Below are positions 41,601 to 44,550 of a stretch of DNA of 64,000 nucleotides, one piece after another (the stretch's first letter is position 1; each line of letters starts with the position of its first letter). The DNA is from Saccostrea echinata. Taxonomy: Eukaryota. The DNA lies in assembly GCF_033153115.1 (NCBI RefSeq), contig NW_026889753.1, forward strand, positions 1,860,001 through 1,924,000, read 5' to 3'. The position numbers and the translations under genes are program-made. The notes under the pieces were generated by a model. That model worked only from the letters and a program-made list of their open reading frames with translations. It did not search any database and was not told the DNA's origin.

Positions 41601-44550
41601 AATTTTAGTGAAAAGTCTACAATCTGTATTACAGATTAAAGTCAGAAATGGTGCAGAGGGTGAACCAAGTGGCAGCTGAATTTAGAAGGGTGTCAAATAA
41701 ACAGATGGCAGAGACCACCAAAAACACAATCAGGGAGAATGTGTCTATCACTGCCCAGCTAGCAAAAATGTCAGATAAAACCATGGAGCTGATTCAGGAG
41801 AATGATGAACTGAAAAAGAAAGAAAAACAGATGAAACAGCACATAGAAATGCTGGAGGATAATGAAAAAACTCTAGCCAAGAAAAACCACAGTCATCAAA
41901 AGGTATGATATAAGGACTTCAGCTATTGCAAAAGATAGCTGAAACAATTCATGGGTCAAAATAATAAGCACATTTGTGTGTGTATGATAAGGGGGAATGG
42001 GGACTCAAACGATCTTGGTAATGACTGCTATACTGCCTTGAAAAGATTACTTTCAACTCCAGGAATGAATATATCAATTAAAGATGTGCATTTCTTTTGT
42101 TCAGTTGATAAAGATGCTGACAGATAAGTGTAGAAATCAGGAGGCGCTTATCGCTGAGTTTGACTCCCGAGAACAGGAATATCAGGAGCTGGATGCTGAG
42201 ATCGATTTCCTGAAGCAGCAAGTCGAGTCACAAAGGTAGAAGAAGCTCATCAGATTGCCAAAAATTTTCAAGCTAAAGAACTTCAGCACATGATGTATAT
42301 ACCATAATGGGTTTTCTTACATCACTATGCAATTTTTTTTTATTTTAGAGAAGAGATCCAGAATCTTGCAAAGGAAAATGAACAATTAGAAGAAGATTTA
42401 AAGGAAGCTACAGTAAAATACAGCTCAGAGAAAAGAAACAAAGAGAAAGTGGACAAAATTTTGTTTGATGCTGCAGAAGCCATCAAATTAATGTTAAAGG
42501 TAATCAATTTGCTCAGAAGTGTTAAAATAATAACATGCACATAACAAGTCTTTTTTTTACACTGAGTGTATTTTCTTTTGAACAGATAAAATGCCTCGAT
42601 GACTACTGTGGAATCATTTTAATTTGAGGAGGGCAATGTTTGTGGGCAATCAAAATTTAATTGCGTTTTTCACGATTTTGATATTTGACTGCCAGGAAAA
42701 CATCAGAACCAGTGCCATTATGAAAAGTGAAAGTACACCTCCTCCAACTGGAGGCGGCAATTTTCGATACATGCAAACTGAATTGAAAGTCTAACTCGCA
42801 TCTTATCAACAGTACAATTTATTAGTACTTACCAATATCACTTTAATTGTTCCTTTGTAAAATAAAGTGGTGGGTGAAAACATTTTATCAAACTGTCGAG
42901 GTTCGTTCTGATTTCATGCATTTTGAAATCTCGTGAGACCTGTATGAAAATGTGGAGTGATATTTTCTTTTAAGCAATATTGATGAGAACTAGAAGCATT
43001 GTGCTATTGATGATTTCTGAGTTTGACCTTTAATTAGGTCTGCAAGTATCAAAAATCAAGTTCAGTTGGGGGCAGCGAAATTTTTTACTTTTCATAATGT
43101 CACCAGTTCTGATGTTTTCCTGGCACGTCACATATCAAAATCATGAAAAACACCTGGAAAACGTCAGATATTTGAGACTAATACAATGCTTATCACTATA
43201 AGTACTTAACTTATTTTCATAACTATTGTCAAAAGCTCTCAAGCATATTGATTTATTCTGTTTAAGTCTGATGATACTGAGTCAGAAGATGGCTACAATG
43301 AAATTGAGAAGAGGGACAACATGCTGGAGAATCTCCTCATTTTACTGAACAGTGCTGCTGCCATTGGAGTGGGGCCTCAACCTGAGGAGTTTGGAAAGTA
43401 TGAAATGAGGCAGAAGAGTGCCAGTGAAATGCCTGGCTCAAAACAAGGCATCAAAAGGGGGTAAGTAAGAGAGTCAAATTTTGTAACTAAATTATTCGTA
43501 GCAATGTAAATATGTATTAGTAAGAATGACTTGGTTGAAGCATTCAAAAAAATATATGAGCAATGATATGAAAATTTGATCAAGCTTACGGATTTTAATT
43601 GTTTTGGTTATGATAGATTTATTCCCCTTATTTCAGAACCCTTCCCATGTCTCCAGTGGCTAGGAGTGGAGGCACACTTCCCCATTACCAACTGGGAGAT
43701 TTGGGTTTGATTCCACGACCGAAGAATCACATTCCTACCAGTGTAGATAAAATGAGGGTCCTATCTGCCACCACCAGACTTGGTGGTCTCCGTAAAGTAC
43801 TGACAAAGTCTGTGGCTGTTCAAACAGTTAGTGCTCCTAAGGTATGCCGTCATTCTTTTGTGATCATGTTAAATGGCTGTCATACTTATATTTATGGCCA
43901 AGATTGAATTTTCTTTTTTTTTTGCGACTACATGTATATTGTTCTATTCACACCACTGTACATGTATTTTAATATATATGTGTATAATGACATTAATACT
44001 TTCCCTTTCAACAGCTCTCATTTTATACATACTTTAGTCTTTGTTCAAATAAATTATCTTAGACCTATTAAACATATGTGAATTATGCCATAGTAAGTTT
44101 GTCATGTTCAGTAGAATCTGTCATTCTGTATATTATTCATAAATCACCATTGTTTTCCAGGCATTATTCTATGCTGACATTGTTTTCCAGGCATTATTCT
44201 ATTCTGACATTGTTTTCCAGGCATTATTCTATGCTGACATTGTTTTCCAGGCATTATTCTATGCTGACATTGTTTTCCAGGCATTATTCTATGCTGACAT
44301 TGTTTTCCAGGCATTATTCTATGCTGACATTGTTTTCCAGGCATTATTCTATGCTGACATTGTTTTCCAGGCATTATTCTATGCTGACATTGTTTTCCAG
44401 GCATTATTCTATGCTGACCAGCTTCTCAGTAAAGCACCTGCAGGTACCCAGGATGCAGTGATTGCCATGACAACAGAGAGGATCAGGTCACCAGGAATAC
44501 CTTTGGGGCCCATACAAACAAACAAACAAATGACCAGTAAAGTCTTTTAA
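38676..44550 (+). CDS. CFAP157: Cilia- and flagella-associated protein 157 (coiled coil)
   Basis: Exons 38676-38830, 39848-39969, 40692-40841, 41221-41374, 41635-41902, 42105-42235, 42349-42499, 43267-43460, 43637-43841, and a last exon starting at one of 44161+30n (latest 44401) to 44550. MPPKKKK start, QIRDLE.RL.RYQ, GKLASLEEF, YDLEKKAVLDK.RLK.EM, YQLGDLGLIPRP. Confidence 0.88.
42663..43152. mobile_element. Foldback MITE in CFAP157 intron
   Basis: TGCCAGGAAAACATCAGAAC..CATTATGAAAAGT is mirrored by ACTTTTCATAATG..GTTCTGATGTTTTCCTGGCA. Confidence 0.65.
44148..44418 (+). repeat. 30-bp tandem repeat (9 copies) spanning the last CFAP157 splice acceptor
   Basis: Unit ATTGTTTTCCAG|GCATTATTCTATGCTGAC; AGs end at 44160, 44190 ... 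44400; one substitution in the whole array. Confidence 0.95.

Follow-up and report, generated by a model that had tools for sequence, protein, structure and literature searches.

A nine-copy array of in-frame splice acceptors at the last intron of a CFAP157-like gene in Saccostrea echinata, with the exon-proximal site probably the one in use

Introduction

When an intron ends in nine nearly identical acceptors, which of them does the spliceosome take and what does the choice mean for the protein? This question is raised by a locus of the oyster Saccostrea echinata that lies within a 64,000-nucleotide stretch of its genome (NCBI RefSeq assembly GCF_033153115.1, contig NW_026889753.1, positions 1,860,001 to 1,924,000 of the forward strand), hereafter called the window and numbered from its first letter. 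The last intron of a gene for a CFAP157-like protein closes there with a 30-bp unit repeated nine times in tandem, and every copy carries an AG that could serve as a 3' splice site. Duplications of intron-exon junctions occur in human disease genes such as HEXB.

A first-pass annotation of the window had proposed that acceptor choice adds zero to eight copies of a 10-residue repeat to the C-terminus of the protein or, if the first AG always wins, that an 80-residue repeat has been exonised. Our analysis leads us to a different answer. The array is probably a young intronic minisatellite of silent pseudo-acceptors, itself probably neutral, in which the last AG is used and the protein is normal. 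The evidence that carries this reading is an assembled transcript joined at the last AG, a reference protein identical to the product of that joint and a junction motif that occurs as a single copy in the orthologues compared.

Results

Nine acceptors in one open frame

Tandem Repeats Finder (TRF) described the array (44148-44418; Table 1) with a period of 30, 9.0 copies, 99% matches, 0 indels and a score of 535, and the sole mismatch is a G>T change at 44204 in copy 2. The unit consists of the 12-nt 3' end of the intron (ATTGTTTTCCAG) and the first 18 nt of the terminal coding exon (GCATTATTCTATGCTGAC). AG dinucleotides end at 44160 and then every 30 nt up to 44400 (n = 9), and all nine (44160+30n) share one frame with the donor at 43841, which is in phase 0, and with the TAA at 44548-44550. 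Read from 44149, the frame gives a repeated IVFQALFYAD with no stop and then QLLSKAP... up to that TAA. This coding frame is missing from the list of open reading frames because it has no start codon across the array; the list holds only the other plus-strand frame and a minus-strand frame. The first-pass annotation had described the 30-bp unit with its nine copies and one mismatch, the composition of the unit, the common open frame and the non-coding frames of the list, and all of this agrees with TRF, with the sequence and with the full exon model given below.

Its claim that a branch-point-like CTGAC accompanies each acceptor stands for eight of the nine. A motif scan placed CTGAC with its A 13 nt upstream of each of AG2-AG9, and a scan for yUnAy motifs found the copy of the previous unit at 43 nt as well. 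AG1 has TTCAT instead (A at 44139, 21 nt upstream), the single yUnAy motif 8-45 nt before it. AG2-AG9 are identical for at least 22 nt before and 3 nt after the cut and each has a 9-nt pyrimidine-rich tract; AG1 departs from them only upstream of position -13.

Searched with the array and its flanks, the 923-Mb assembly gave a single DNA match, the locus itself, with clean and unique flanks and no second haplotype copy. A dispersed satellite or a transposon piece as the origin of the array was ruled out by this single locus. Recursive re-splicing of an exonised array was also considered and rejected, the unit having no plausible donor (AG|GCATTA; GTTTTC lies inside the tract).

Table 1. Coordinates of the CFAP157-like gene, the tandem array and its acceptors in the window.
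Feature	Position	Strand	Evidence or remark
CFAP157-like coding sequence, 10 coding exons, 559 aa	38676-44550	+	spliced-contig joints
Coding exons 1-5	38676-38830, 39848-39969, 40692-40841, 41221-41374, 41635-41902	+	
Coding exons 6-10	42105-42235, 42349-42499, 43267-43460, 43637-43841, 44401-44550	+	
Penultimate coding exon (exon 9), end ...TVSAPK, phase 0, then GT donor	43637-43841	+	
Last intron, 559 nt, of which ~253 nt array (eight full units and the intron part of the ninth)	43842-44400	+	
Terminal exon, coding part: ALFYADQLLSKAP...KVF, then TAA 44548-44550	44401-44550	+	X2 contig piece 44399-44626
AATAAA, candidate polyadenylation signal, ~155 nt past the stop codon	44705-44710	+	
Tandem array, 30 bp x 9.0	44148-44418	+	TRF and sequence reading
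Array mismatch T (copy 2)	44204	+	marks AG1/AG2 use in reads
AG1, first of the nine AGs, silent in the observed transcript	44159-44160	+	
Other silent AGs (ends)	44190, 44220, 44250, 44280, 44310, 44340, 44370	+	no joint in contigs
AG9, exon-proximal, acceptor in use	44399-44400	+	X2 contig joint, GT..AG; protein identical to P0189
CTGAC, branch-point-like, A at 44387, 13 nt before the used AG	44384-44388	+	motif scan; putative branch point
TTCAT, A at 44139, candidate ancestral branch point	44136-44140	+	motif scan; putative branch point

The assembled transcript is joined at the last acceptor

Contigs from four public runs were aligned over 38650-44645; they had been built from 31-letter words, a procedure by which rare variants are lost. 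One run, X2, tentatively labelled as RNA, clearly holds cDNA: it yielded a 1681-nt contig with nine introns removed at a depth of 507.8. Its last joint was placed at 43839>44399, and shifting the cut by +2 to give GT..AG ends sets it at 43841|44401, which corresponds to the AG at 44400. The contig extends at least to 44626 and runs without a gap over 44399-44626; the 18 nt occur in it once, and CAGCTTC... comes next. The base at +19 after the donor junction tells the acceptors apart, being C with the last AG and A with an upstream AG, where the 18 exon nt would be followed by ATTGTTTT....

No joint from donor 43841 to any upstream AG of the array was present in the contigs of the four runs. 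The sole joint from 43841 leads to 44401, in the contigs of one run, and this is the behavior of a junction minisatellite in which only the exon-proximal site is used. An alternative tandem acceptor would show at least two acceptors in mRNA; we found one junction, in a comparison that is weak for rare isoforms.

Read depth in X2 gives the same picture. Its exons lie at about 480-510 and the bin 44050-44249, in which most of the array falls, at 2.6, most of the latter coming from an intron contig of depth 3.3 that covers 43950-44159. The array sequence is thus not enriched above the intron background in X2. Use of upstream AGs at 5% in an array-bearing allele would raise the array words far above intron depth, which is not the case in this run. 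The end of the intron contig at 44159 was considered as evidence on the allele and set aside, since it matches neither expectation and at a depth of 3.3 is probably a chance end.

Neither proposal of the first-pass annotation on splicing finds support in these data. Addition of zero to eight repeats is not supported by a transcript that joins 43841 to 44401 and a RefSeq protein that is the product of the last AG, and exonisation of an 80-residue repeat from the first AG is no better supported by an X2 mRNA with one 18-nt copy. The annotation had itself set exclusive use of the AG at 44400 against its idea, and this AG was the only one joined to donor 43841, in the dominant transcript of one run.

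The host gene encodes a CFAP157-like protein, probably of normal length

All introns of the ten-exon model are GT..AG after joint placement and the frame is open over the joined exons. We joined the exons by script for a frame check and an exact comparison with a reference protein (P0189): with the last AG, the 559-aa product equals XP_061169615.1, "CFAP157-like [Saccostrea echinata]", residue for residue. This entry is listed without an isoform label. The spliced contig reveals one exon, 43267-43460 (194 nt), that is easily overlooked when open frames are inspected and is required for the 559-aa product. It was absent from the first-pass annotation and leaves the phase at 43841 unaffected.

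No Pfam domain scored above threshold in nine exon translations, the only matches being sub-threshold and of coiled-coil type. A search of 1.84 billion representative proteins with the longest exon, exon 5 (41612-41905), found 365 relatives at E<=1e-3. The closest full-length relative, P0015 from Nucella lapillus (566 aa), is 62% identical to the S. echinata product, and used as a query it retrieved hundreds of entries named "cilia- and flagella-associated protein 157" from molluscs, echinoderms, amphioxus and amphibians. The frog CFAP157 (P0047) is identical at 222 of 559 residues, about 40%. Two C-terminal motifs of CFAP157, HYxLGDLGLIPRP and, in molluscs, TQTVSAPK-ALFYADQLL, are both present, and with the last AG they align free of gaps. 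Judged by this homology the host of the array is a CFAP157 orthologue, and the gene name given by the first-pass annotation is confirmed by these matches and by the identity to XP_061169615.1. CFAP157 (C9orf117) is a coiled-coil protein of cilia and flagella to which the S. echinata product is homologous over its full length, and the family name would make the host a cilia or sperm gene. Its transcript contig is very deep in one run, X2, from a tissue of unstated origin. If the last AG is used there is no difference to its relatives at the protein level, and the array is a novelty of the lineage at the level of DNA.

Other introns of the gene contain repeats. At 39260-39318 and 42604-43180 many unrelated contigs match at 90-95% in all four runs with both ends loose, and these segments are dispersed repeat fragments within CFAP157 introns. 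Skips of 430-450 nt that lack GT..AG ends are present at 42689-43144 in some runs and point to an insertion/deletion polymorphism of a repeat element. Among the relatives, the CFAP157 isoforms X1 and X2 of Magallana gigas (P0283/P0286) are distinguished by a single K at the exon 7/8 junction, a tandem acceptor of the NAGNAG type at another intron, and P0288 (595 aa) has an alternative C-terminal extension past ...TAKAT.

Could several acceptors nevertheless serve, weakly or in certain tissues, giving isoforms with 1-8 extra ALFYADIVFQ units as noise or under regulation? The sites themselves would allow it: AG2-AG9 are locally identical, each with a consensus-like CTGAC 13 nt upstream and its pyrimidine-rich tract, and as every site keeps the frame and belongs to the last exon, the isoforms would escape nonsense-mediated decay, while rare isoforms would be invisible in contigs. 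There is also precedent in the donor-side minisatellites of IFI6/6-16 and CBS, which also use the two pseudo-sites nearest the authentic one (PMC1557585). The four runs contain no joint to upstream AGs, however, and X2 shows an array depth at about intron background vs about 508 in exons; the RefSeq protein carries no isoform label. The protein sequence argues in the same direction. The hypothetical insert is strongly hydrophobic, with a mean Kyte-Doolittle value of +1.34 vs -0.91 for the whole protein, and following SAPKALFYAD it would displace the conserved QLLSKAP continuation. That growth to nine copies was tolerated although the insert would be hydrophobic and break a motif argues that the array is spliced out. 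We therefore regard the use of several acceptors as unlikely.

Pieces of the array occur in reads outside the assembly, and the expansion is recent

Two other runs contain pieces of the array. In run X1 (2018), two 59-nt contigs cover 44174-44262, the position of the copy-2 T included, with 0 mismatches; in run X6 (2023), a 90-nt contig (44187-44276) lies entirely within the array. They contain unit-to-unit junctions (...GCTGAC|ATTGTT...) that are impossible in a single-copy state, and at least about three tandem units are therefore present in reads outside the assembly, although the X1 and X6 runs may include the sequenced animal itself. It is very improbable that the array or its copy number is an artefact of assembly. 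Nine copies is the figure of the assembly and contigs from 31-letter words are unable to count copies of a 30-bp period, which leaves such a reading some room, but the mismatch-free X1 contigs with the copy-2 T included, the X6 contig wholly inside the array, the junctions that both sets need and the clean, unique flanks of one genomic locus all stand against it.

We then compared the junction across orthologues. The 18-nt exon start encodes a motif conserved across Mollusca: a single K-A-[LM]-F-Y-A-D-Q junction is found in Ostrea, Magallana, Crassostrea, scallop, pearl oyster, ark clam, Solemya and the gastropod Nucella, the full motif being TVSAPK-ALFYADQLL in Ostrea, Magallana, Crassostrea, Mizuhopecten, Pinctada, Tegillarca and Nucella, while Solemya has the near-identical TVSAPK-AMFYADQLL. 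Among 282 fetched proteins, not one contains the ALFYAD junction motif twice, and when metagenome contigs were scanned for the exact pattern of the acceptor and its 18 nt there were 0 matches. As the junction is single-copy in all orthologues compared, the amplification is young and belongs to the Saccostrea echinata lineage, in keeping with only one mismatch within 270 bp; that the ancestor was single-copy is shown at the protein level only. The recent expansion suspected in the first-pass annotation is thus borne out by a single SAPK|ALFYADQLL in every orthologue compared, three other oyster genera included.

The X1 and X6 pieces also bear on the genotype of the X2 animal. This animal differs from the assembly by about 20 single-nucleotide polymorphisms (SNPs) in 1.7 kb (about 1%). 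An X2 record that can be placed at two sites of the stretch, together with a little residual depth inside the array bins, hints that the X2 animal carries the array at intron-level depth; this is depth arithmetic only and is not used as proof. The genotype matters for a further alternative, in which the X2 animal is single-copy and on array alleles the AG at 44160 wins by scanning, so that 240 nt are exonised and a 639-aa protein with an 80-aa hydrophobic repeat is made. A single-copy genotype would be compatible with the X2 mRNA, the presumed ancestral branch point is kept at a canonical 21 nt from AG1, and early globin constructs with duplicated sites were spliced at the proximal copy only (PMC1557585). 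Array pieces occur in both X1 (2018) and X6 (2023), however, so the array may be common and X2 would then probably be a carrier, as the two-place record and the residual array-bin depth also hint by the same arithmetic. The RefSeq model on this very assembly takes the last AG. Moreover, an 80-aa hydrophobic insert in a mollusc-invariant motif would probably be selected against, yet nine near-perfect copies are found. We judge first-AG splicing of array alleles to be improbable.

Discussion

Our results are best explained by silent pseudo-acceptors. A recent expansion of the slippage type would have multiplied a 30-bp segment across the last intron-exon boundary into nine 3' splice sites 30 nt apart. 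Of these the spliceosome would take the last, the AG at 44400, as partner of donor 43841, the other eight copies would leave with the intron, and the conserved 559-aa protein with its single SAPK|ALFYADQLL junction would result. If the last AG is chosen the branch point must lie in the last or second-to-last unit, and the lariat would form at the CTGAC A at 44387 or 44357. In the single-copy ancestor this CTGAC would have been exonic (codons A-D), and duplication would have made of it a branch-like motif before the next AG. The likeliest discriminator between the copies may be exon context: a real exon behind the last AG would bias the choice through exon definition or enhancers, and the upstream AGs would be poor exon starts, followed by 18 exon-like nt and then by another intron tail.

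Several points weigh against this explanation. Because AG2-AG9 are locally identical, exclusive use of the last site is not predicted by local sequence alone. According to the 5'-to-3' scanning rule the first AG past the branch point is preferred (PMC3048548), and were TTCAT (A 44139), the candidate ancestral branch point, in use, the rule would point to AG1. The transcript evidence consists of one assembled contig from one run and from an animal that differs by about 1% SNPs; a single-copy allele in that animal would yield an identical mRNA, and since contigs lose rare variants, minor use of upstream AGs is compatible with the data. Finally, the RefSeq model may rest on alignments of orthologous proteins and would then not be independent.

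The closest parallel that we found is on the donor side. The variable number tandem repeat (VNTR) of intron 7 in human F7 has a 37-bp unit in 5-9 copies, with its first monomer lying across the boundary between exon 7 and intron 7 (Borensztajn et al. 2006, PMC1557585). The authentic donor of F7 is used, the identical pseudo-donors downstream are silent and the protein is unchanged; both the polymorphism and the competence of the pseudo-sites were shown by experiment (PMC1557585). The same work lists further splice-site minisatellites in IFI6/6-16, CBS intron 13, LMNB2 and PDGF, in some of which the two nearest pseudo-sites are also used (PMC1557585). The S. echinata array shares with F7 a unit, here the ninth, that spans the boundary (44400|44401), pseudo-sites that match the authentic site, with AG2-AG9 identical and AG1 differing upstream of -13, and an exon-proximal site that is the only one seen in use, in the contigs of one run. 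The two differ in more than their hosts, a mammal and a bivalve. In F7 the donor (5') site is reiterated downstream of its exon whereas in S. echinata the acceptor (3') is reiterated upstream, each pseudo-site bringing its own pyrimidine tract and branch-like motif, and the used site is transcribed first in F7 but last in S. echinata. Since the used acceptor is transcribed after all the others, its choice cannot come from a simple 5'-to-3' first-come rule. By analogy, the S. echinata array is a putative acceptor-side mirror of the F7 donor-site minisatellite. We found no described case of an acceptor-side splice-site minisatellite in the open-access subset of the literature, which is not proof of absence.

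Two other systems invite comparison. NAGNAG acceptors lie 3 nt apart, share a branch point and tract, and both of their AGs are used (PMC2875228, PMC3048548). The S. echinata sites resemble them as near, in-frame AGs at one intron end that could add or remove codons without a frameshift, but they are 30 nt apart, have a tract and a branch-like motif each, and one of them is seen in mRNA. In globin constructs with duplicated splice sites, exon sequence and proximity decide and the outcomes of different laboratories were opposed (refs 40-42 in PMC1557585). There too a duplicated 3' splice site with some exon sequence gives competing identical acceptors. Those constructs had two copies and mixed outcomes, whereas the nine-copy array of S. 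echinata appears resolved toward the copy with the full exon.

If silent pseudo-acceptors are the right explanation, the protein is ordinary, the minisatellite is young and neutral, and the locus is already annotated with its last AG. The array would then be a natural test case, in which nine acceptors of the same local sequence compete, all but AG1 preceded by a consensus-like branch motif, and the last is apparently picked. Such a last-site choice counters a simple first-AG rule and points to exon context as the decider. The F7 donor minisatellite served to dissect the choice of 5' splice sites and here we have an acceptor-side counterpart. The locus also carries a warning for annotation, as in-frame repeated acceptors may lure gene predictors into 80 spurious residues. 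As a putative VNTR beside a sperm or cilia gene, the array may in addition serve as a population marker in a farmed oyster.

A more active role of the array would require that the nine acceptors are not all silent. In animals that carry the array some transcripts could take upstream AGs, perhaps only in certain tissues or stages such as spermatogenesis, or the decoys could titrate U2AF/U2 and slow removal of the last intron. If this were true, VNTR copy number would tune the length or the dosage of CFAP157. We hold this to be unlikely.

Other features of the window

A second amplification of a splice acceptor lies at 49917-50038 in a neighbouring gene on the minus strand, as an array of 3.0 units of 41 bp with 96% identity. 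Read on the minus strand, its units carry a pyrimidine tract and CAG|G (TTATCTTATTTTGCAG|GGAAC), and the unit at the low-coordinate end (+ strand) spans the 3' splice site of the exon. The distal copy has TAAG in place of GCAG. As 41 is not a multiple of 3, the copies are out of frame. The adjoining exon reads ...GSIVNISSLVGK / ...GTWLLNRAVGKAMLADKVPGSIVNISSLVGK and looks like an exon of a short-chain dehydrogenase/reductase.

Two of about a dozen distinct arrays in the window thus sit on a 3' splice site, which seems more than chance would give, yet two are too few for any conclusion. A broader version of the idea of non-silent acceptors would have the oyster genome tend to seed minisatellites at splice junctions, with this array, 5.5 kb away, as a second case; such a tendency, if true, would provide a natural series of experiments on splice-site choice.

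Upstream of the CFAP157-like gene, the plus strand at 27398-28566 holds a 264-aa open frame that is reverse-transcriptase-like (...FADDTIVY...), followed by two more open frames, and is probably a fragment of a retrotransposon without long terminal repeats (non-LTR). Larger satellite-like arrays with periods of about 139-155 bp occur at 6384-7163, 34630-35600 and 59795-60047, and those at 6384 and 59795 look like one family in opposite orientation.

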